NCBI RefSeq assembly: GCF_001194135.2
Contig: NC_068985.1
Location: 21,765,188-21,829,187 of the forward strand
Reading direction: 5' to 3'
DNA from: Octopus bimaculoides
Lineage: Eukaryota
Length of the DNA: 64,000 bases
Under the pieces are notes generated by a model, which saw only the letters and a list, made by a program, of their open reading frames with translations, ran no database searches and was not told the origin of the DNA. Positions 14,965-60,513 of this stretch are shown here, one piece after another. A program made the translations under genes and the position numbers. Position 1 is the first letter of the stretch. Each line of letters starts with the position of its first letter.

Positions 14965-14974
14965 NNNNNNNNNN
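14965..14974. other. Assembly gap (10 N) flanked by a ~160-bp inverted duplication
   Basis: N run; 14727-14890 is nearly the reverse complement of 14976-15132. Confidence 0.95.
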
Positions 14975-15782: not shown

Positions 15783-16196
15783 NNNNNNNNNNNNNNNNNN
15801 NNNNNNNNNNNNNNNNNNNNNNNNNNNNNNNNNNNNNNNNNNNNNNNNNNNNNNNNNNNNNNNNNNNNNNNNNNNNNNNNNNNNNNNNNNNNNNNNNNNN
15901 NNNNNNNNNNNNNNNNNNNNNNNNNNNNNNNNNNNNNNNNNNNNNNNNNNNNNNNNNNNNNNNNNNNNNNNNNNNNNNNNNNNNNNNNNNNNNNNNNNNN
16001 NNNNNNNNNNNNNNNNNNNNNNNNNNNNNNNNNNNNNNNNNNNNNNNNNNNNNNNNNNNNNNNNNNNNNNNNNNNNNNNNNNNNNNNNNNNNNNNNNNNN
16101 NNNNNNNNNNNNNNNNNNNNNNNNNNNNNNNNNNNNNNNNNNNNNNNNNNNNNNNNNNNNNNNNNNNNNNNNNNNNNNNNNNNNNNNNNNNNNNNN
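15783..16196. other. Assembly gap
   Basis: N run. Confidence 1.
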
Positions 16197-17463: not shown

Positions 17464-18147
17464 NNNNNNNNNNNNNNNNNNNNNNNNNNNNNNNNNNNNN
17501 NNNNNNNNNNNNNNNNNNNNNNNNNNNNNNNNNNNNNNNNNNNNNNNNNNNNNNNNNNNNNNNNNNNNNNNNNNNNNNNNNNNNNNNNNNNNNNNNNNNN
17601 NNNNNNNNNNNNNNNNNNNNNNNNNNNNNNNNNNNNNNNNNNNNNNNNNNNNNNNNNNNNNNNNNNNNNNNNNNNNNNNNNNNNNNNNNNNNNNNNNNNN
17701 NNNNNNNNNNNNNNNNNNNNNNNNNNNNNNNNNNNNNNNNNNNNNNNNNNNNNNNNNNNNNNNNNNNNNNNNNNNNNNNNNNNNNNNNNNNNNNNNNNNN
17801 NNNNNNNNNNNNNNNNNNNNNNNNNNNNNNNNNNNNNNNNNNNNNNNNNNNNNNNNNNNNNNNNNNNNNNNNNNNNNNNNNNNNNNNNNNNNNNNNNNNN
17901 NNNNNNNNNNNNNNNNNNNNNNNNNNNNNNNNNNNNNNNNNNNNNNNNNNNNNNNNNNNNNNNNNNNNNNNNNNNNNNNNNNNNNNNNNNNNNNNNNNNN
18001 NNNNNNNNNNNNNNNNNNNNNNNNNNNNNNNNNNNNNNNNNNNNNNNNNNNNNNNNNNNNNNNNNNNNNNNNNNNNNNNNNNNNNNNNNNNNNNNNNNNN
18101 NNNNNNNNNNNNNNNNNNNNNNNNNNNNNNNNNNNNNNNNNNNNNNC
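17464..18147. other. Assembly gap
   Basis: N run. Confidence 1.
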
Positions 18148-22339: not shown

Positions 22340-23340
22340 ATACTTCATTGGTTGTATGAACAAAGTCTATTGTGTGCTTGTGGCCTTGTGTGATGGCTGT
22401 CTGGCTGAATCATTGTTGAAGTATCTGTAAGTGCTTGGATAGAAAATGAGTGGTGTGACGAGGATATTTGAGTGTTTATCAGTATATGTATGGGAAGGTG
22501 TTTAAAGGAAAAGAAATCAGTTATTGATACTGGACCAAGCATTTTGGAAGATTTTGCCAATAAAGCCAAGAATCAAGAGCTCCACATTGTTGTACAAACT
22601 TGTAAACAGTGGGTCAGATGAGAGAAGACTCAGAACTGAAGTTGCAGAATACAGGCCTGAATGACTTGGTGTTGTTGTGCCAGACATCTAACAAATGTGC
22701 TCTAAAACAACCAGCCAACCAACCAGCCAACCAACCAGCCAGCCAACCAACCAACCAACCAACCAGCCAACTAACCAGCCAACCAGCCAACCAACTAACC
22801 AGCCAGCCAACCAACCAACCAACCAGCCAACTAACCAGCNNNNNNNNNNNNNNNNNNNNNNNNNNNNNNNNNNNNNNNNNNNNNNNNNNNNNNNNNNNNN
22901 NNNNNNNNNNNNNNNNNNNNNNNNNNNNNNNNNNNNNNNNNNNNNNNNNNNNNNNNNNNNNNNNNNNNNNNNNNNNNNNNNNNNNNNNNNNNNNNNNNNN
23001 NNNNNNNNNNNNNNNNNNNNNNNNNNNNNNNNNNNNNNNNNNNNNNNNNNNNNNNNNNNNNNNNNNNNNNNNNNNNNNNNNNNNNNNNNNNNNAACCAAC
23101 CAACCAACCAACTTCCAACCAGGTTCCATTGAGTTGACATTTGATACAGTAGATGACAGGTTTGAAGATACTGTCATCTACTGCATGTGACATAGAAAGG
23201 CGATCTAGGATCATCTGCGGTGATGATGTTTATGTCTTTTAGTAATCATGGGACAAACATTGCAATGGGATCAGAAACAGGCAAAGGATCCAGGTTGGGT
23301 ATGGTGAGGGGTGAAGGAACTGCATTGAGGATAATAATGT
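22340..23340 (-). mobile_element. Penelope-like element fragment (GIY-YIG endonuclease region) split by an (AACC)n tract
   Basis: PGSFAC...CNVCPMI, KPVIYCIKCQL and [11 protein letters not shown] match PLE zinc-finger/GIY-YIG motifs. Confidence 0.65.
22707..23112. repeat. (AACC/AGCC)n tetranucleotide repeat spanning an N gap (22840-23093)
   Basis: Direct reading. Confidence 0.95.
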
Positions 23341-24860: not shown

Positions 24861-25086
24861 AAATGTGTAATATAAATGAAAAGAAGGATACATAAGCTCT
24901 GTGCTTGTTGGGATGCAGTTCTTTTGAAGTTAGTTTATAGCTGCTTGTTTTCACAGATATCCTACCAATCATAATAATTATGATCCACACAGCACTTTAA
25001 CTGCTCATTTATAATGCATGAAAAGAGCCATATCCATTTATTATGTGTGTCATAGCTATGTTTTATTGATTTTGTTTCTATCAAAG

Positions 25087-25269
25087 GTTAACAATGAAAT
25101 AACATCTGGCTCAGTCACTAATTATAAAATTGTGGTAAAAACTGGTAATAAATTAGGTGCTAGCACCAGAGCTCAAGTTAAAATAGTGCTATATGGAGAT
25201 CGTGGAAGAACTAAACCTATAGATTTGCTTGAATCGAAGACAAACAAGATAAAATTTCAAAAGGGAAAG
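25087..25269 (+). CDS. PLAT/LH2 domain exon 1 (YKIVVKTGNKLGASTRAQVKIVLYGDRGRT...FQKGK)
   Basis: Classic PLAT N-terminal motif Y.I.V.TG...GA.T.A.V.I.LYG..G; AG/GT boundaries, phase 0-0. Confidence 0.9.
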
Positions 25270-25705
25270 GTAAATATCTTTTTTTTTTATAAAGTTAGTA
25301 TGAAAAACTTAATTAATCATATTGATCTATTTTCATTTAGTTATTGATTTTGACTCTGAAAGTAATTAAAATACTAAATTCATTGTTTTAAGTTAGAAAA
25401 ATGAAAGCTTTTCTGTTAGCATATTGACATATTTAAATTCCAAAAACTCATTTAATATTTCTTAATCCCTAATGATCAACTACTACTTCAGTCCCTGTAC
25501 ATTAATTCTAGTTGTGTTATGTGAAATTTAATCTTTGAGCTGTTTTAATGATGATGGATAGCAATCTTTTCTATAATTTTATGTTTGTGTTAATCTCGCC
25601 AAATATATATTTCACTCTAAAATGCTTGGTCAGCTTGGAATCCCTTTAGAGGTTTATTGACAACAAATAATATCTGAAGTTATATATTTTATTTTAATTT
25701 TTCAG

Positions 25706-26084: not shown

Positions 26085-28760
26085 ATCATCATCATCATCA
26101 TCATCATCATTTAGTGTCTGCCTTTCATGCTAGCATGGGTGGGACAGTTTGGGAGGAGTTGGCAGGCAGAGGCCTGCACCAGACTTCTGTGACTGTTTGG
26201 GCAGGATTTTTACAGCTGGATGACCTTCCTAACACCAACCACCCAGCAGAGTGGACTTAGTGCTTTTTACATGGCACAAGCACAGGGTAGGTCAGTTTTG
26301 GCAAGGTTTTTACAGCTGGATGCCCTTCCAAATGCCAACCACTTTACAGTGTGGACTGGATGTTTTTGAAGTGGTGCCTGCACTGACAGGGTCACCAAGT
26401 AATCTGCAAGACAAAAATTTTTTGAGAGGGGAGGGGCATTGGAGGAGGTGATCTTATATCAGATGATGAGGGGTTATAGTACAACAGAGAAACAGAAACA
26501 GGTGTCTTGCTGTAGAGGAGGTACAAGGTTACCCAGCTGGGGGGAAAGAGGGAGAGAGAGAGATCAAGAATGAGGATAGAAACAGGTATGTTGCTGCAAA
26601 GGAGATACATGGTTACCCAAAGGAGATACATGGTTACCCAAAGGAGATACTTGGTTACCTGACCAGAGGGAAGTGCTGGAGAAGGGAGAGAGAGAGAGTG
26701 GGAGGCATCAGAATAGAGATGTTGGCAGTGCCAGGCATACTTTCAAGGGATGGGGATCAGAATATAAATGGGATGGTTGATTAAAGGCAGAGAGAGATAT
26801 AGATGGTGGCAAGTGCCAGGGCATACCCTTGAGGTTCAAAGGTCATAATATATTTGGCAGGATATTGCCAAAGAAGCATGATTAGAGAGTAGGGAGGGGA
26901 AGTGAATGGTGAAAATCTGGGTATATAGAATGGGCGGGGTGCTACCAGATAGCAATGATATAGAGAGACAGGGCCATGAGGACAGGATTGGGGAGTGAGA
27001 GGTAGGCATAGTGCATGAAGGAGGAAATGTGAAGAAGAGAAGAGATTTAGAGATGTAGATTGGTTTGTTGGGGAAGGGTGTGTGGCAAGTTTTCTTGTTA
27101 CATGTGGGTAGAACATGTGGAGGCTACCAGATAGCAATGTTACAGTGGGACAGGGTCAAGAGGACGGGATTGGAGAGTGGGAGGTAAGCATAGTGCATGA
27201 AGTGGAAATGTGAGGAAGAGCTGTAGAGACATGGTTTGTTTTGTTGTGGTAGAGTGTGTGAGAAGATTTCTTGTTATGTGTGGGTGGGACACACAGCACT
27301 TCTAGAAATCAGTTTCGTTGATATGGGCGGGTATTCTCAACAACAATTTTGGTCCTTGCTAGGTTAATTTTATGGCCCTTTGATTCCAGGTTTTGCTTCC
27401 ATACCTGGAATTTATTCTCTAATTCTGCTAAGGATTCTGCAATAAGTGCAAGGTCATCAACATATAGCAGTTCCCATGGGCGTCCAGTTTTGAATTCCTC
27501 TGTTACAGTCTGGAGGACTATAACGAATAAGGGTGGGCTGAGAACTGAGCTTTGGTGAACTCCTACTTGTACGCTAAATTCATTACTGTATTCATGGCCG
27601 ACTCTCACCTTACTGACAGCACCACTGTACATGACTTGTACAGCTTTAACAAGCCACTCCTCTACTCCTAATTTCCTTAGAGATCACCATATAACAGATC
27701 GGACAACTCTGTCGAAAGCTTTCTCCAGGTTGACAAAGGCTAAGTACAATGGCTTACTTTTGACCAAGTACTTTTCCTGCAGCTGTCTCACTAGGAAGAT
27801 GACATCTGTGGTTCTCTTGCCAGGCACAAAGCCAAACTGCATTTCATCTAGTTTATTTCTATTTCTAATCAATTGAGCTACAACCCTCTCTGTAATTTTC
27901 ATGACTTGGTCTAGCAGTTTAATTCCTCTGTAGTTGTTTCTATCTAAGGCATCACCTTTACCCATGGTGCCTTTCTGAATAACCTGATTAACAATATGGG
28001 TGACTAAGCTGTATCCTACACCACTGGAAATTTTAATCACCTCAGCAGTGATTCTTGATGGCCCAAGGGCTTTCCCTGTCTTCATATCCTTAATTGCCTT
28101 ATCTTTTATGTTGCTATCAACTCTGATGGCTGGTCCCTCAATTGGTTAGATATTTGGTAGACTCTCCTTCTTCCATTCATTTTCCACATTTAGTAACCTT
28201 TCATAGTAACACTTCCATGCTTCTTTCTTCTCTGAGTCACTAAGTGCAAGCACACCATTATCCATTCACACACATTTCTCACCCACCCATCTCTATTCTC
28301 TCTGATACACTGCTTTGCAATCTTGAACACCTCATGCCTCTGATTCTCAGTTGAACATTTGCAAATCTCTTACCTTCAGCTATTCTTTTTGCTATGTAAA
28401 CCTGACGTCTAGCTGCCCTTTTGGCTACCTGATATAATTCTCTGCTTCCACTGCTTTTTTAGTCTTTCCAGATCTGTCTATTTGCTTTTACAGTACTGTC
28501 TACCTCCTTGTTCCACTACCTTGTCACCCTTGGTCTAGCTGGGACTCTGCACCAACCACAGATTTCATCTGTAGCCCTCACTAAATTTGTCTCACATGAA
28601 CTTTTAATTGTTCTCTATGCTATATGTTCCCAACTCTTCCTCTCTTTCATCAGAAGCTTCCATTAGGAAATCTTTAAATTTCTGTCTGTTTGCTAGGTCT
28701 TTGAGCTTCCATAATCTTCTTTTCCAGACTGATTTATTTCTGCGAGTCTTTCTAGCCCTT
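26085..28760 (-). mobile_element. RTE-clade LINE, internally deleted, with a tandem-repeat-rich 3'UTR and (CAT)n tail
   Basis: RT motifs NYRGIKLL, QFGFVPGK.TTD.IF, DLEKAFDRV-like, VGVHQ.SVLSP.LF, WELLY.DDL at 27309-28085; 3' end matches family C. Confidence 0.9.
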
Positions 28761-42639: not shown

Positions 42640-43290
42640 ATTTAATTGATTGAAATACATTTGAAGGACACTTCCTGAAGACTTGAAGAAGATAGTTACA
42701 TTGACATGAAGCAAAGCTTCTCTTGGATTCATGACCACTACATTACACTTCAAAGGCTGTACATTTGTAATCCAAGAACAGGAGATTGCTACTAAATACT
42801 CAATCAACAAAAGAGACAGTAAAACCGTTGGAGCTCCAAAGTGCAATTGGAAATGTAGATTATGTCATGTGTCTGTGGAAGACATATGATAAGCAGCTGC
42901 CCAAAAATGTCTTCAAGATACTACCTTGTCACAAAAACAATATACAATGTCATTCAGAAAAAAAGACTGTTCTGGAATAAATATAGAGAATTCCTCTGTT
43001 AATGAATATAATGACAAATATCAACACAAGGAATACTGGTGGAACATTCCCATCAAAACATCTGTTAAATCTATACATAACAGGCTAGATATTGTTGTTT
43101 GGGACAGACAAGAAAAAATATGCACCATCATGGCGGTCAGTTGTCCTGCTAATGTGAATATTTCTTTGAAAATCAAAGAGAAAGAGGATAACTACGGACA
43201 ACTGCTTTGAAATCTCTCACTTCTATATCCAGATTATAAATTGACATTTATACCAATAACAATTGGTGCACTTGGTTTTGTGAGTAAACA
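42640..43290 (+). mobile_element. R4-like RLE non-LTR retrotransposon 3' fragment
   Basis: FVIQEQEIATKY, CRLCHVSVEDI, YWWNIPIKT...HNRLDIVVWD...SCPANVNI, FIPITIGALG. Confidence 0.8.
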
Positions 43291-44320: not shown

Positions 44321-44910
44321 GTAAACTGAACCACAAAAGAAATGCTGCGTATATACTAAATAGAAACTGGTTTATTAACAGAATGCCATAGCATTGATTG
44401 AAGAGTGCTAATTAAGAAACTGTTCTTTCCTAATGATAAAACACCATTTCCTGAAACATGTTTGACGTCACATGGTGTCACATGATGACGGAGTGTCCTG
44501 GATCCAAAGAGATGAACTCAATATTTCATGTGACCACCGTTAGCATTGATTACCACCAAGCATCTTCTGTATACTGAATGCACCAAATGATTGATCAAGG
44601 CTATGGGTATAGCAGCCCATACTCTGTTAAAACTTGCAGTGAGTTGTGCTGCAGTCGTTGGCCTTGGACAGATGTCATTTAGCCTTCTTTGGACTTCATC
44701 CCACAAGTGCTCTATGGGATTCAAGTCCGGACTTAGGGCAGGCTATGGCAGAGTCTGGATGTTGTGCTGTTGGAGGAAGTCTGTTGTCAACCTGGCAGTA
44801 TGGGTACGGGCGTTGTCGTGTTGGAACACGTGATTCCGATGATGGGTAAAATATGACACAATGTGAAGCCTCAACACTTGGTCGATGTAGTGAGCAGTGG
44901 TTACTCCATT
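44321..44910 (-). mobile_element. Tc1-like transposon, 3' half
   Basis: FQHDNARTHTAR, SPDLNPIEHLWDE and NGGH.KY motifs; TIR-like end near 44321. Confidence 0.88.
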
Positions 44911-45433
44911 GCCCTGGCTGCAAAATTTTTTTTCCTACAAGAGTAATGAACTCATTTGCATACAGCCAATCAGAGCTCACCTTGAAAATCCACATACTGT
45001 ATACTATTAGAGTACAGCCAATCAGGCATAGAATGGTGTATGCCACTCTGTGAGTACAGCATAGCAGGTCTCACATAAGCACCACATTCCCACCACCCAT
45101 CATTCTCATACATCAACTGAGCACCATCTCTATATAAAGATAAGTTTAGCACATTAAATTAACACATAATATCTTCAATGACGCTACCACTGAATTTAGG
45201 ACGTTTTTATTACTTATGAGGTAGTCTATATTTTTCAGCTAAAGTGTAGTTTTGTCTCAAGGGGATGGTACAAACCTAGCAATATGTGTTCTATAGTGAA
45301 AACAATATTTCCATTCAAATGGCAATTACTGGACGATTTTCTGTTTGAGTATAACTGTTTTAAGTCATTAGGCATATGAATATTGTATAAATTTTGTAAT
45401 TGAAAAATTTACTATATTTTGTACATATGAGTA

Positions 45434-46492: not shown

Positions 46493-47197
46493 CTGAATAT
46501 AGAAACAAGAATGAAGGTGAACTCTGGCAGGGTTTGCCCTCAAATTATAAAGACACATAACTAATCATTGTTTTATATTAACCGACCATTCTACCAAGCC
46601 ACCAGAACATTACCAACAATAACAATAATTGTTTCTAAGATAAAAGAGAAAGTTTGAAATTTGGGAGAAGGGGTATAATTGATTTTATTGACTCTAGTTC
46701 TTGACTGATACTTTAATTTATGGACCCCTGAAGAATGAGGCAAAGTTAACTTTTGAACATAGAACTGAAAATGTCAACAAATACTGCATGACTTTTTTTT
46801 TTCAAAGCTCTTATAATTCGGCCAATATATCCTCCTCAATGATATTTCCTGTCTTAAGTAGAAGACCTCAAGTTTGGGAGAGTGATTATATCAACTCCAA
46901 TACTTGACTTTATTTCATCAATCCTGGAAGGCTGAAAGATGAAGTTGATCTTGGCTGCATTGGAAACCAGAATATAAAGAGCTGTTAAAAATAACAGTGC
47001 TCTAACAATTCTATCAATCCACCACTATTCTTGTTCCTGGGCAGTAAGTGTTATTTGCTAATTTCTTGTGTTGATAAAGTATAGAAAACCATTATTACTT
47101 CCTTTAAAATTTGCTTTTGTGATCTGGATAATGATAATTCGAAATTTACTAATTTCTTATGGGGAATTTGTACATTTTCATTTACATAAGGTTTGAA

Positions 47198-47377
47198 GGA
47201 GTGGCTGTGTGGTAAGTAAGTAGTTTGCTTCCTAACCACATGGTTCTGGGTTCAGTCCCACAGCATGGCACCTTGGGTAAGTGTCTTCTACTATAGCCTC
47301 AGGCTGACCAAAGCCTTGTGAGCGGATTTGGTAGATGGAAACTGAAAGAAGCCTGTCATATGTGTGTGTGTGTGTGC

Positions 47378-47418
<41 letters not shown>

Positions 47419-47575
47419 TCCCCCCAACACCATTTGACAACTGATGCTGGTGTGTTTATGTCCCCGTAACTTAGCGGTTCGGCAAAAGAGACTGATAGGA
47501 TAAGTACTAGGTTTACAAAGAATAAGTCCTGGGGTTGATTTGCTTGACTAAAAGTGGTGCTCCAGGTGGTGGTCA
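47198..47575 (+). mobile_element. SINE family A, full length
   Basis: Near-consensus. Confidence 0.88.
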
Positions 47576-47829
47576 GAAATAAGATAAAGGATGACTCGTC
47601 CAAGAAAATAACATTCCTCCACTGCTCTAGGGACCAATTCTGTAGGTTTTTACTCCACTCTAAATGCTTTGCAACATTTGTATTTGAAAGTAGTGGTTTT
47701 CTGATTGTAGCCCTCCTGTAGATCTCTGATCAAATTGTTGAGGTATTTTTGGTTGTTGTGTAACTCCTTAACTGCACCTCAGAAATTGCGATCTGAGCCT
47801 ACATTTTTCCCCATTCTGACATGCTCTCT

Positions 47830-48502
47830 GTTTCTCTGTCTCTGCCCCCACTCTCTCTCCTGAAGACAGCTGTTCTGTGGCAGACTGGACACAAGAAGCT
47901 CAGGGTAATACATGCATATAGTTGCATATCTAGACATGCGCATATATATTCAAATGATAAACTTCTGGAAAGTTTTACAGATTTTTACAATTCCAGTGAT
48001 GGATTGGAGCTATAGTCCTTGAATTAGCTTTCTCCTTTCTGGTTTTGAGAAGCCTAATTTCTCAAGATTGGTATTTAAGCAGTGTGTTATATATGCCAGG
48101 GCCCCAATAATTACAGGTATAAACCTGAATTTGTAATCTGGATAGAGTAACTTCAGATTTCTCAATAGTTCAGCATCGGTGTTCTCTTTTTCACTGATCT
48201 TCAGCTTTATGTTAACATCCGCTGGGCAGCTAATTTCCATAATTGTGCACAGTTTCTCTTCTCTATCCCAAATCATTATATCAGGTCTGTTGTTCTTACA
48301 TTTTATTGAGGTCTTCACTGGTACATTCCACCAGTATTCCTTTTTGTTATGAGCAACTATGGCTTCTACCATATTGTAAGTTCTTATTTCTTTGTCCGAG
48401 GGAATATCCTTCCGACGAATTTCATTATAGAGTGTCCTAGCTACAACATCATGTCTCATCGGTAGATAATACCATGATGACATTTTCGGACAATTGCTTA
48501 TG
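47830..48502 (-). mobile_element. R4-like RLE non-LTR retrotransposon 3' fragment (largely intact frame)
   Basis: CPKMSSWYYLPMRHDVVA, NNRPDIMIWD...EISCPADVNI, FIPVIIGAL; 5' end abuts (TACA)n. Confidence 0.88.
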
Positions 48503-48855
48503 ATATGTATGTATGTGTGTATGTATGTATGTATGTATGTATGTATGTATGTATGTATGCATGTATGTATGCATGCATGTATGTAAGTATGTATGCGTAT
48601 TTGCATCATTGTTTCTGTTTTGCCCCTTCCCTCACTTGACAACCAGAGTTGGTTTATTCACACCCCTGTAACTTAGCAGTTCAGCAAAAGAGATCGATAG
48701 AATAATTCCAGGTTTAAAAATATGTACTGGATTCAATTTGTTGGACTAAATTCTTCGAGATGATGCCCCAGCATGACTACAGACTGAAACAAGTAAAAGA
48801 CCAAAGCGGGCAAAAATTATGTCTTAGCATCTAAAATTTTTTTTGCTGTGCTCAC

Positions 48856-49020
48856 AGGTGAAATGAGATTTCCAGAATTTGCTTCCAAAATACCAAAATA
48901 TGCCTTGTTGACTTCACACATTTTAGTGGATAGTGCCATAGAGTACTTTTTCATTCTTGTCTTGATAAATTGGCCAAAACAAAATGCGTCTGCCAGATGC
49001 TTATAACATCTTGGCAGCAT
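48856..49020 (-). CDS. Candidate first coding exon (MLPRCYKHLADAFCFGQF...GNLISP)
   Basis: 55 open codons, phase-0 donor GTGAGC, about 45 nt downstream of an Inr-like TCAGTT. Confidence 0.3.
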
Positions 49021-49107
49021 TTCTGATAAATGCAGATAGCCTTACCCATTTAGGTAGCTAGAACTGAACTGGTGAGCTTAAGGCCCTTTTATTTGAATTA
49101 CTAAGAA

Positions 49108-49232
49108 GTTCTTGAAAATTCTAGAAAGTTCTTGAAAGTTGTAGGAAATTCTAGAAATCACTTGAAAAATTCTCCAAAATTCAAGAAAGTTCTCAATCAG
49201 CCACTCAGCACTGAATCTATCTAGAATGTTCT
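49108..49232. promoter_or_regulatory. Heat shock element (nGAAn) array
   Basis: Ten alternating pentamers in register at 49108-49157 (8 perfect, first six contiguous); further units at 49163-49193 and 49223-49232. Confidence 0.6.
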
Positions 49233-49928
49233 GGGAAATAGGTAAATTTTAAAATATCGCTACTAAGGTCACGAAAGCATGTTTTAAACATATGGAGAAA
49301 GGAAATATCACTGCCTAGTAACAACAACAAAAAAGTAAACATTTTATTATATTTGTAATTGTTTCTAACACAGGTACAAAAGCTGAAATTTGTGGGGCGG
49401 GGTTGAGTCGATTTTATCGACCTCAGGACTTGACTGGTACCTTATTTTGCCGACCCTGGAAAGATGAAAGGATAATAATAATAATAATAATGATGATGAT
49501 GATGATGATGATGACGATGATTATGATTTCCTTTTATTTTAAGACAGACAGCACAACATAATAACTGCTTCGATCGGTATTGAAAAATATAGCTGAATGT
49601 TTTTGTAAGGGAGTTAACTATTTGGGGGACGGGAGCGACCTAAAAATTTTTGTTGTACGCAAGCGACATATTACTGTTTCCTCTGGTGCAACTACACAAC
49701 AATTTCATTTAGAGTTAATAGTATTTAACAAAATACATCAATGTGTATAATTCTACAGCAGTGTACTTAAAGCAGACATTACATTCATTTATAATATATC
49801 GCATGATAAACACGAACGTACTCTTGTTTATTTACATATAACTAATACGATTACAACAAAAATATAGGTACTGGTGACTTAATATGAAAAGAGGTGTGTA
49901 TAAAACGTTTTGATGCATTTAGAGTGTG

Positions 49929-50442
49929 ATGGAAGAAAGTGAATTCCTGCATAAGATTTCTGATGAAGACGAACAGGATCGTGATTACACTTGCCGGTTA
50001 GATATAGAGCCGATAGCAACGTCAACAACATCGCCGATAACAACATCAACAGCATTGCCATCATCACAAACAACATCAATAACACCAGATGTAAGTTGCA
50101 GCAAAGCGATTTTTCAATCATCACTTTCCAGCTTCGAAACTGATTTTGAAGACATTCCTGTAACACCTGCGGACTGTCAATTGTCATCTAACCATGATTC
50201 AAATAGTAAGACATTTGATGTGCGACAATCTGACTCTGAAAGAGTCCGAGGTGCATTGTGTCGCGTTTTTAGCCAAAATTATTCCGAAAGTGACTCGATT
50301 AGTGTCAACTCGTCACTGGTAACATCATCTTCATCATCCTCATCACGCGTCTCTCCGAAAAGAATGGCTAAAAGTGATTCATTCTGTGACTGCTATGCTC
50401 TTGGTCAAGAAAAAGAATGCCTGTGTGGAGAAGAAGATTCGT
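49929..50442 (+). CDS. SPSB3: SPSB3 exon 1 (Ser/Thr-rich N-terminus, ...SFCDC...CLCGEED)
   Basis: FCDC/C.CGEED motif precedes the SPRY domain in SPSB3; donor GTAAGT at 50443, phase 1. Confidence 0.85.
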
Positions 50443-51907: not shown

Positions 51908-52095
51908 TTTTTGACTGGGTCTGGGATGAAGATTCTAAATCTTCTGCTTGCCTACTGAAGCAAGACCACAGAGAAGTATTATTTCACATGGACTATAGCT
52001 GTGGCACAGCTGCCGTACGGGGTACTACCCCAATGAAAGACAATCAACATTATTGGGAAGTGAAAATGACCTCCACAGTCTATGGCACTGATATG
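51908..52095 (+). CDS. SPSB3: SPSB3 exon 2 (FDWVWD...[15 protein letters not shown]...[16 protein letters not shown])
   Basis: Hallmark SPSB3 SPRY sequence; TTTCAG and GTAATG, phase 1-0. Confidence 0.95.
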
Positions 52096-52633: not shown

Positions 52634-53889
52634 TTTGGTTGTCCAGAAAGTTCATGCCGATTTTTAGTCGTTCATGTTCCAACACGTTAGAACATGTCAA
52701 ATTTATTGACACATATGCTTACATTTCCAGTTAGCGCACACTTCAAACTATCTCTTGAGAAGGAAAGTTTAAAATTACTTAATTCATGTCAATTTTGCAT
52801 CCCTATGAAAATGGAAGATTATAAGGTGTATTTTAAGCACTTGATGTTTTTTTTTATGACTGTAAAGGCAAAAATGCCTCACAAGCAACAAAAAAGATGT
52901 GCTGTGTACAGTGAAATTGCTTTAGCTGACAGAACTGTACAGAAGTGGTTCACTAAGTTTAGAGTTGGTGATTGTAGCCTTATTGATAAAGAATGCTTAG
53001 GCAGACCCCTCCCCACTACAGATGATGACCAAATCAAGACATTGAAAATAATCTGCATTACACAACATGGAAATTGGCAGAAACACTTCCACCATCTATG
53101 TGCGCTTAGGTACTCAAATTGCTACGATGTTTGGGTACCACATGATATGAATGAAATGAATCTTTTGGATTGCATTTCTATCTGTGATTTGCTGTATTAA
53201 TGCTATGAAAATGCACCCTTTTTGAAGCAAATTGTGATAGGTAATGAGAAATGGATTGTTTACAACAATGTTCAGTAAAAAAAGATCTTAGGGTAAGCGA
53301 TATGAGCCACCTTTAGCCACCCCAAAAGCAGGTCTTCATCCTAAGAGAGTCATGCTTTGCATCTGGTGGGCTTGGAAAGGAATCCTGTATGACGAACTTC
53401 TGCCAAGTAACCAGTCATTTAATTCTGAGAAGTACTGCTCACAACTGGACGATTGAAAGGCAGCAATTCAAGAAAAGCACCCAGAATTGACAAACAGGAA
53501 AGGCGTTGTTTTCCATCAGGATAAAGCCAGACCTCACTTCTTTTTGGCAACTTGTCAAAGATTGTTGCAGCTTGGCTGGGATGTGTTACCCCACCCACCA
53601 TATTCAGCAGACATTGCTCCTTTGGATTTTCATTTATTCAAGTCCTTGCAAAATAATCTCAAAGGTAAAAATTTTAATTCTTTGGGGTTATAAAAAACCA
53701 CCTTAATGAGGTCTTTGCCAAGAAACCACTGAAATTCTGGGAAGACAGAATCTTTAAGTTGAAGGAAAGATGGAGAAAGATTGTGCAACAAAATGGTTCG
53801 TATTTAGTTGAATAAATATTTAATGGCATAATTTTGTTTTTTCTTTTAATTTCCCTTAAAAATCGGCATGAACTTTCCAGACAACCCAA
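52634..53889 (+). mobile_element. Full-length decayed mariner (1256 bp, TIRs, TA TSD)
   Basis: TIR TTGGTTGTCCAGAAAGTTCATGCCGATTTTTA at both ends; WIVYNN, FHQDKARPH and HPPYSADIAPLDFHLF motifs; stops and frameshifts. Confidence 0.93.
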
Positions 53890-56309: not shown

Positions 56310-56538
56310 ATGGTTGGAGTTGGAACACAGAGTATTGACTTGGACAAATATCGTCATGCATTTTGTAGCTTGCTGGGTAGAGATGAGGACAGTTGGGGTC
56401 TGTCTTACACAGGTGTCACGCATCACAAGGCTCAGAAAGAACTATACACATCTAAATTTGGCCAAGGAGATATCATTGGGGTCCATCTTGATATGTGGCA
56501 TGGAACAATGTCATTTTATAAAAACAGAAGACCTTTGG
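56310..56538 (+). CDS. SPSB3: SPSB3 exon 3 (MVGVGT...[16 protein letters not shown]...[23 protein letters not shown])
   Basis: Hallmark SPRY sequence; TTTTCAG and GTAGGT, phase 0-1. Confidence 0.96.
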
Positions 56539-60139: not shown

Positions 60140-60513
60140 GTATTGCATACAAAGGACTTCAAGGAAAAAACTTATACCCAGTTGTATCCTCCACAGCTGC
60201 TCGAAGTGGTATGAAAGTGGTCAGATGTCAGTCATTTCCAACATCTCTTCAGTTCATGTGTTGCCAAATCTTACGCACACATATCCCAAGCCACATGGAT
60301 GTTTTAGAAGTTGTAGATTTGCCTCCTGGTTTGCGAACTTTCCTCCACGACAAAGTTGGTTGGTTACTGCAATCCTGTCGTTTATTTGTCAAAGATGTTG
60401 TAACTGCTGGTTCAAAACGACCATGTCAATCTCCTTATGGATATTATGAAGATGATGATCGGCGGAAAAGGCGCTGCTTATGGCCTGTTAACTCATTGCC
60501 AGAACCATCTTAA
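60140..60513 (+). CDS. SPSB3: SPSB3 exon 4 (end of SPRY, SOCS box TSLQFMCCQILR...LPPGLRTFL, stop)
   Basis: LYPVVSSTAARSGMK and SOCS box; CTATAG acceptor, phase 1; TAA at 60511-60513. Confidence 0.96.

Follow-up and report, generated by a model that had tools for sequence, protein, structure and literature searches.

A dense array of heat-shock element (HSE)-like pentamers lies 0.7–0.8 kb upstream of the start codon of SPSB3 in Octopus bimaculoides, within a 64,000-nucleotide stretch of contig NC_068985.1 (NCBI RefSeq assembly GCF_001194135.2; forward strand, positions 21,765,188 to 21,829,187) that was analyzed as a whole and is called the window here; all coordinates count from its first letter. 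Its sequence and its record among related species suggest that the array is probably a young, repeat-born binding site for heat-shock factor (HSF) near SPSB3 that is likely non-essential, and that it is neither a solo long terminal repeat (LTR) nor a part of ancestral SPSB3 regulation. A young and probably dispensable site is favored because the array evolves in a neutral-looking manner and is restricted to one lineage. In at least three Octopus species the array has become fixed, a short distance upstream of a conserved promoter. It is a minisatellite, now decayed, and its unit, nTTCnnGAAn, makes up an HSE dimer on its own.

An HSE-Like Array in a Single Pentamer Register

The main array spans 49103–49167 in a single 5-bp register (AAGAA GTTCT TGAAA ATTCT AGAAA GTTCT TGAAA GTTGT AGGAA ATTCT AGAAA TCACT TGAAA in O. 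bimaculoides; no strand is assigned to the array features). The initial annotation, made from the letters alone, had placed ten alternating units in exact register at 49108–49157, and both the coordinates and the pentamers check against the sequence: eight of the ten have perfect nTTCn/nGAAn cores, the degenerate units being GTTGT and AGGAA. Six perfect inverted pentamers are contiguous at 49108–49137, where at least three contiguous inverted nGAAn pentamers in 5-bp register make an HSE; on this sequence criterion there is room for two adjacent HSF trimer sites, and the array qualifies by sequence definition as the strong, multi-trimer HSE that had been proposed. The TGAAA at 49163 keeps the register of the main array. 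An extra 1-bp A near 49167, private to O. bimaculoides, then shifts the second sub-array (49169–49193; ATTCT CCAAA ATTCA AGAAA GTTCT) by +1; this sub-array holds three contiguous perfect units at 49179–49193, and in O. vulgaris and O. sinensis it follows the register of the main array. A small distal site at 49223–49237 (AGAAT GTTCT GGGAA) consists of two perfect units plus GGA and regains the original register; the further units that had been followed to 49232 are thus present, and extend to 49237.

Arithmetic from base composition gives an expectation of ~5e-6 six-unit perfect runs per 64 kb, and dinucleotide shuffles of the window give 0.02 for the four-unit exact pattern vs. two overlapping occurrences found, solely at the array. 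Outside the array, the 64-kb window holds no other run of three or more perfect HSE units. Since the array is a tandem repeat, random sequence is not the proper null for the chance of its exact register. Three inverted pentamers bind one HSF trimer, and longer arrays are bound cooperatively; from six (O. bimaculoides) or seven (O. vulgaris and O. sinensis) contiguous units and flanking partial sites we infer that the array is a very strong candidate HSF site.

Tandem-Repeat Origin and Decay of the Array

The initial annotation had raised the possibility of a 10-bp tandem repeat, and Tandem Repeats Finder indeed calls a decayed repeat of period 10/20 bp at 49106–49193 (consensus TTCTAGAAAA / AAGTTCTTGAAAATTCTAGA), with a period of 10 bp (8.4 copies, 67% matches), of 20 bp (4.3 copies, 69%) and of 31 bp, and 67–71% matches overall. 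The exact pentamer register arises because a decamer holding TTCTAGAA (TTCnnGAA) was duplicated head to tail. Besides the head-to-tail copies recovered by the repeat finder, the length differences between orthologues come in whole periods, as in a minisatellite: a 20-bp indel separates the Logan loci L001–L003 (introduced below) from O. bimaculoides, O. vulgaris and O. sinensis, and array length is otherwise stable save for one 1-bp indel.

We compared the orthologous loci of O. vulgaris (L009), O. sinensis (L011), a fourth Octopus-like species (Logan assemblies, runs SRR11869384-94, L001–L005), Argonauta hians (L010), Dreissena, Haliotis, Mytilus and Saccostrea. In O. vulgaris and O. sinensis, GGAAA serves as an extra first unit and brings the contiguous perfect units to seven; the whole forms a single register of 18 pentamers with perfect runs of 7 + 3, 14/18 perfect cores and no register break, so that 13–14 of 18 cores are intact across these two species and O. 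bimaculoides. The fourth species (L001–L003) has lost 20 bp, exactly one long period, and carries core substitutions in several units that leave a 2 + 2 gapped arrangement, while its distal site is a perfect three-unit HSE (AGAAT TTTCT GGAAA). This species is ~90% identical to O. bimaculoides in the intergenic region vs. 94% for O. vulgaris, i.e., it is more distant. The imperfect units GTTGT, xGGAA, xxACT and CCAAA are common to all Octopus-type sequences, and decay of the repeat had therefore begun before these species split.

Between O. bimaculoides and O. vulgaris, the array is 93.8% identical, the unique flanks 94.2% and 95.7%, the promoter block 96.2% and the region overall 93.5%. At this depth no constraint on the array is detectable, and it appears to evolve at the rate of its flanks; with ~6% divergence between the two species, the rate test has low power.

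In Argonauta, homology begins only at 49606 and continues at ~80% into SPSB3 exon 1. The sequence from 49606 to 49928 (plus strand) forms a deeply conserved SPSB3 promoter/5' untranslated region block, ~80% identical to Argonauta hians, contiguous with exon 1 and free of HSEs. A perfect HSE of three or more units is absent from the 10 kb upstream of SPSB3 in Argonauta, Dreissena, Haliotis, Mytilus and Saccostrea (~0.12 expected per species). The array is therefore an Octopus novelty rather than ancestral SPSB3 regulation, and the idea that an HSE is an ancestral part of SPSB3 promoters was rejected on the same result.

TATA-Like and Initiator-Like Motifs on the Minus Strand

The initial annotation had further read the array as part of an hsp70-type layout in which HSE, TATA box and initiator (Inr) follow one another on the minus strand. 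Both motifs stand where it placed them, AATAAAAG at 49093–49086 and TCAGTT with its A at 49065. The TATA-like AATAAAAG (49086–49093, minus strand) lies 15 bp from the array edge and is off TATAWAWR at the first base; CTTTTATT is conserved in all four Octopus-type sequences. The Inr-like element is a tandem of CCAGTT and TCAGTT at 49062–49072 (minus strand), with the A at 49070 and 49065, respectively, and a distance of 28 nt separates the TCAGTT A (49065) from the first base of AATAAAAG. In O. vulgaris and O. sinensis, TCAGTT occurs in two copies alongside a 5-bp insertion, one copy again standing 28 nt from the TATA-like box, and the Inr-like motif is lost in the fourth species (L001; AATCGAATTGG on the plus strand). 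Both the TATA-like and the Inr-like motif are weak, and relaxed TATA + Inr pairs occur at ~9 independent sites in the 64 kb, i.e., about once per 7 kb. The hsp70-type layout is real as a pattern, which is common to O. vulgaris and O. sinensis; against a promoter of this type speak the off-consensus TATA box, the loss of the Inr in the fourth species and the fact that no downstream gene was found.

Stop-to-stop open reading frames (ORFs) were read and ten selected ORFs were scanned against Pfam. The only ORF downstream of the putative minus-strand transcription start site (TSS) lies at 48832–49041 (minus strand), and 8 of its ~10 differing codons are non-synonymous between species. With mostly non-synonymous differences and no Pfam match, it was rejected as a coding exon. 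Rfam returned no known RNA gene near the array, only sub-threshold microsatellite artefacts, and ORF conservation, Pfam and Rfam together gave no protein-coding or known RNA gene downstream of the Inr-like motif, where transposon debris follows further on. An unannotated long non-coding RNA, or a heat-induced non-coding transcript of the minus strand, is possible but unsupported. The array had also been described as head-to-head with SPSB3. This is not supported: no minus-strand gene was found in 24–49 kb, so nothing is annotated head-to-head with SPSB3, and its upstream neighbor is a PLAT-domain gene on the same strand.

Solo-LTR and Transposon Origins

A ~210-bp solo LTR with GTAGC...GCTAC termini had been suggested for the array-bearing segment. 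GTAGC is present at 49054–49058 and GCTAC at 49259–49263, as described, and the absence of a target-site duplication (TSD), which the initial annotation itself had conceded, holds as well (the segment is flanked by TTTAG and TAAGG). The LTR reading itself does not survive. The proposed ends are GT...AC instead of TG...CA. In O. vulgaris, O. sinensis and the fourth species (L001), GTTAC stands in place of the right "terminus" GCTAC; the 5-bp inverted match is thus not ancestral but a coincidence seen in O. bimaculoides alone. A TSS at 49065 combined with an LTR end at 49054 would leave 12 bp for R plus U5.

The search for copies and LTR pairs that had been proposed as a check was likewise negative within the loci covered. 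Sensitive blastn found no second copy of 48837–49235 in the 64-kb window, where the flanking families that resemble short interspersed nuclear elements (SINEs) alone are repeated, and no copy of the array segment beyond the orthologue in the O. vulgaris and Argonauta loci (98.9 kb together). A metagenome scan for a conserved 20-mer of the array gave three unrelated chance matches. A protein-database search with the stop-free translations of 48830–49360 joined by X returned nothing at E<=10, but it also missed the orthologous short ORFs of L001–L003 and is uninformative. Contigs assembled from the short reads of three runs extend across the array without a break, which argues, weakly, against a young high-copy family. 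By eye, neither a GC-rich 3' hairpin nor a CTRR end of the Helitron type is evident next to the array, where element boundaries are undefined.

An old low-copy repeat does adjoin the array at 49235–49340 (plus strand). It has an inverted paralogue at 47047–47156 (blastn E 6e-10 within O. vulgaris, 1e-7 across species), beside which there is no array.

Proposed Action of the Array and Competing Explanations

The 10/20-bp tandem repeat arose in the Octopus lineage within a transposon-littered intergenic region. In the reading we favor, that of a young and probably dispensable HSF site, heat or proteotoxic stress would trimerize HSF, and the array would be occupied cooperatively by at least two trimers, as HSF biology leads one to expect. 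If it has an effect, the array would act as an upstream HSE cluster irrespective of its orientation, with two putative outcomes, both unproven: some stress inducibility might be added to SPSB3, and an unstable divergent transcript might start from the adjacent TATA/Inr-like motifs. Several points weigh against this reading. At ~6% divergence, a neutral rate cannot be told from weak constraint, and five of the seven substitutions that separate the O. bimaculoides and O. vulgaris arrays fall at free "n" positions (binomial P ~0.1), which is the bias that constraint would be expected to produce. The TATA-like/TCAGTT pair is common to three species, and such pairs come only ~1 per 7 kb, so that its juxtaposition with the array is not trivially expected. 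An old repeat adjoins the array, which keeps a transposon origin in play. Finally, HSF occupancy is read from motif quality alone.

That the array is instead a functional, selected heat-inducible enhancer, which wires SPSB3, as a substrate receptor of the CRL5 ubiquitin ligase, into an Octopus heat-shock regulon, we consider unlikely. Such an enhancer would account for a very strong motif that is the sole HSE of at least three units in 64 kb, for its place 370–500 bp upstream of the conserved promoter block, for the retention of 13–14/18 cores in O. bimaculoides, O. vulgaris and O. sinensis and for substitutions that lean to free positions; the perfect three-unit distal HSE in the species whose main array has decayed could be binding-site turnover. 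It sits poorly with a substitution rate equal to that of the flanks, with the 20-bp loss and core substitutions in one species, with a register broken in O. bimaculoides by a 1-bp insertion and with the lack of an HSE upstream of SPSB3 in Argonauta and the four other molluscs. In the literature searched, no paper connects SPSB3 with HSF or heat shock or deals with HSE repeats in cephalopods, and a thermal-stress transcriptome paper on O. maya does not mention SPSB, SOCS or HSF. The more specific proposition that a tandem duplication confined to the genus Octopus made a super-strong HSF site, and thereby placed SPSB3 under heat-shock control there but not in Argonauta or other molluscs, seems distinctly improbable on present sequence data. 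The array could also be a neutral minisatellite that binds no factor in vivo, whether in closed or methylated chromatin or through a preference of octopus HSF for another arrangement. Its neutral rate and slippage-type length change agree with such a fate, and good HSE motifs of other animals are occupied only in part, as chromatin allows; six to seven contiguous perfect units near an active, conserved promoter would nonetheless be an unusually good site to stay unbound, and we doubt that this is what happened.

Two further explanations were weighed. Carriage as the cargo of a multicopy, HSE-bearing transposable element (solo LTR, DNA transposon or Helitron-like), an account that overlaps the others, is quite unlikely: the intergenic region at 42–49.6 kb is all transposon debris, an old repeat with an inverted paralogue 2.1 kb away adjoins the array and transposon-borne overlapping tandem HSEs are documented (PMC6927752), but the LTR hallmarks fail (TG...CA ends, TSD, conserved termini, R/U5 length), 48837–49235 has no second copy in the loci searched, the paralogue at 47047–47156 lacks an adjacent array, short-read contigs of three runs pass through and the metagenome scan gave chance 20-mers only. 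Very unlikely, in our view, is an hsp70-type HSE–TATA–Inr promoter that fires a heat-induced non-coding transcript of the minus strand near 49065, divergent from SPSB3. A gap of 15 bp between the proximal pentamer and AATAAAAG, and a further 28 nt to TCAGTT, would suit such a promoter, as would the conservation of the TATA-like box in four sequences, the recurrence of TCAGTT at 28 nt in O. vulgaris and O. sinensis and the scarcity of relaxed pairs in the window. The TATA box is off consensus, however, the fourth species has lost the Inr, the two motifs, which were chosen post hoc, have a 5-bp indel between them, and no conserved ORF, Pfam domain or Rfam family follows downstream; after ~230 bp the transcript would enter a SINE, a microsatellite and retroelement debris.

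Comparison with Known HSE Systems

Like HSE promoters of the hsp70/hsp83 class, the array has TTCTAGAA cores in at least three contiguous inverted pentamers, with a TATA-like box at ~15 bp from the proximal unit, followed after 28 nt by an Inr-like TCAGTT. Unlike them, it has an off-consensus TATA box and no heat-shock gene or any conserved gene found downstream on the minus strand, it consists of a decayed tandem repeat and, with 18 pentamer slots, greatly exceeds the usual length, and it stands several hundred base pairs upstream of the conserved SPSB3 promoter. On the features examined, the array, if functional, would work like canonical hsp70-class HSEs and would belong to neither the LTR nor the Helitron class.

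In Arabidopsis, the HSEs of ONSEN (ATCOPIA78) belong to a genuine LTR, which ends in TG...CA, is accompanied by a TSD and comes in paired copies around an internal region. The octopus array resembles ONSEN as an HSE cluster in non-genic repetitive DNA that could, by analogy, give stress-inducible transcription, and differs in that it shows none of these features in the window and the loci searched. In human satellite III, HSF1-bound tandem repeats give rise to stress-induced non-coding RNA (PMC9032817). The octopus repeat unit likewise has nGAAn-type motifs and could similarly recruit HSF to non-coding DNA, but satellite III forms kilobase-to-megabase pericentromeric arrays, whereas the octopus array is ~90–130 bp long at a single euchromatic intergenic site. 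In Caenorhabditis, overlapping tandem HSE clusters borne by Helitrons rewire the heat-shock response (Garrigues et al. 2019, PMC6927752). These clusters share with the octopus array a dense, repetitive arrangement of overlapping tandem HSEs near non-chaperone genes and a lineage-specific distribution; the octopus array differs as a single locus within the loci searched, with neither Helitron ends nor a 3' hairpin seen in its flanks by eye.

Implications for SPSB3 and Stress Regulation

In mammals, SNAIL and nuclear cGAS are targeted for degradation through SPSB3 acting as the CRL5 receptor. Should the array prove to be bound and active, an E3-ligase receptor would join the cephalopod heat-shock regulon, with some interest for octopus thermal tolerance, and the locus would offer a clean case in which the source of a regulatory element was a local tandem repeat and not a transposon. 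The loci form a comparative series that runs from seven contiguous perfect units in O. vulgaris and O. sinensis, through six units with the register broken in O. bimaculoides and decay in the fourth species, to the lack of any array in Argonauta. Were Octopus-specific heat control of SPSB3 true, it would represent the de novo, non-transposon birth of a stress enhancer, and species with a decayed array would be natural knock-downs of the element. If the array is unbound, it would caution that perfect-looking motif arrays can be by-products of repeats and that motif density alone does not equal function.

The SPSB3 Locus and Its Neighbors

The window at 48000–50500 matches O. bimaculoides chromosome CM046605.1 at 100% identity. 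The plus-strand gene had been taken for SPSB3 with its ATG at 49929, an assignment that the protein searches bear out: the spliced window protein matches the solved SPSB3 structure 8okx_B in the PDB at E 6e-102, and exon 1 gives a 100% tblastn match to the O. bimaculoides cluster member XP_014789455. The protein falls in a 90% cluster with the SPSB3 of O. bimaculoides, O. sinensis and O. vulgaris. Coding exon 1 lies at 49929–50442 (plus strand; tblastn of the O. bimaculoides SPSB3 protein P0123 and splice sites read from the sequence), and coding exons 2–4 follow at 51908–52095, 56310–56538 and 60140–60513 (plus strand; tblastn and splice sites). A word-indexed protein search with exon 1 alone returned a single Logan ORF and none of the annotated Octopus SPSB3 proteins, although a query with the full-length protein recovers these at 99% identity; negatives from this search call for caution.

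Between the array and the conserved promoter block, 370–500 bp downstream, lie a SINE tail and a trinucleotide microsatellite. This microsatellite stands directly upstream of the conserved block in both Octopus and Argonauta. The last ~100 bp before the SPSB3 ATG are nearly invariant across four aligned octopod sequences, and the motifs of the block include TAAGGGAGTTAACT and GACGGGAGCGAC.

Upstream of SPSB3, the nearest protein-coding gene encodes a PLAT/LH2 domain and has the same orientation, with a PLAT exon at 25015–25344 (plus strand) and, by homology, the end of its coding sequence near 42.1 kb. Gene lists of the loci show the PLAT–SPSB3 order kept in O. vulgaris and Argonauta hians.

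Repeat Debris around the Array

The interval from 42.1 to 49.6 kb is transposon debris, made up of Tc1-like pieces, retroelement-type ORFs, SINE copies and microsatellites. The inverted pair 47047–47156 / 49235–49340 is ~70% identical over 110–130 bp. O. bimaculoides and O. vulgaris both have it, and it brackets the HSE array along with debris of Tc1-like, SINE and retroelement type. The two members may be remnant terminal inverted repeats. Their assignment as the terminal inverted repeats of one DNA transposon is no more than tentative: the pair is real but old, and its ends and a TA duplication are not definable.

A SINE-tail-like interspersed repeat at 49356–49471 (plus strand), with at least six copies in the window, is present in all Octopus orthologues and is directly followed by an (ATA)n(ATG)n microsatellite at 49472–49527. 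Together with a second interspersed family at 48610–48800, it flanks the unique, array-bearing segment; each family has at least six copies in 64 kb, both look like parts of octopus SINEs and both are older than the split of the Octopus species compared.

A retroelement-type C-terminal ORF occurs in two copies, at 42893–43207 (plus strand) and 48010–48642 (minus strand), with the motifs EYWWN.P.KTS and DI..WDR.EK.CTIM..SCPA.VNI; the Pfam scan gave no match for these copies. The copy at 48010–48642 is fused to a TATG microsatellite. Rfam matches to mir-297, mir-466 and mir-3149 at 48505–48606 fall below gathering scores on the (TATG)n microsatellite and are composition artefacts. Tc1-like transposase fragments were seen by eye in the intergenic region at 44521–44934 and 47570–47729 (both minus strand), and the ORFs scanned there, 44746–44934 and 47235–47729, have no Pfam match.

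Farther from the array, a Mos1-type mariner sits inside SPSB3 intron 2 (52694–53200 and 53292–53690, plus strand), with an HTH_48 match and DDE-like ORFs recognized by eye, and an RVT_1 reverse-transcriptase fragment of a non-LTR retroelement lies at 27312–28145 (minus strand). Runs of N at 14965–14974, 15783–16196, 17464–18146 and 22840–23093 mark assembly gaps, and ORFs that run across them are artefactual.

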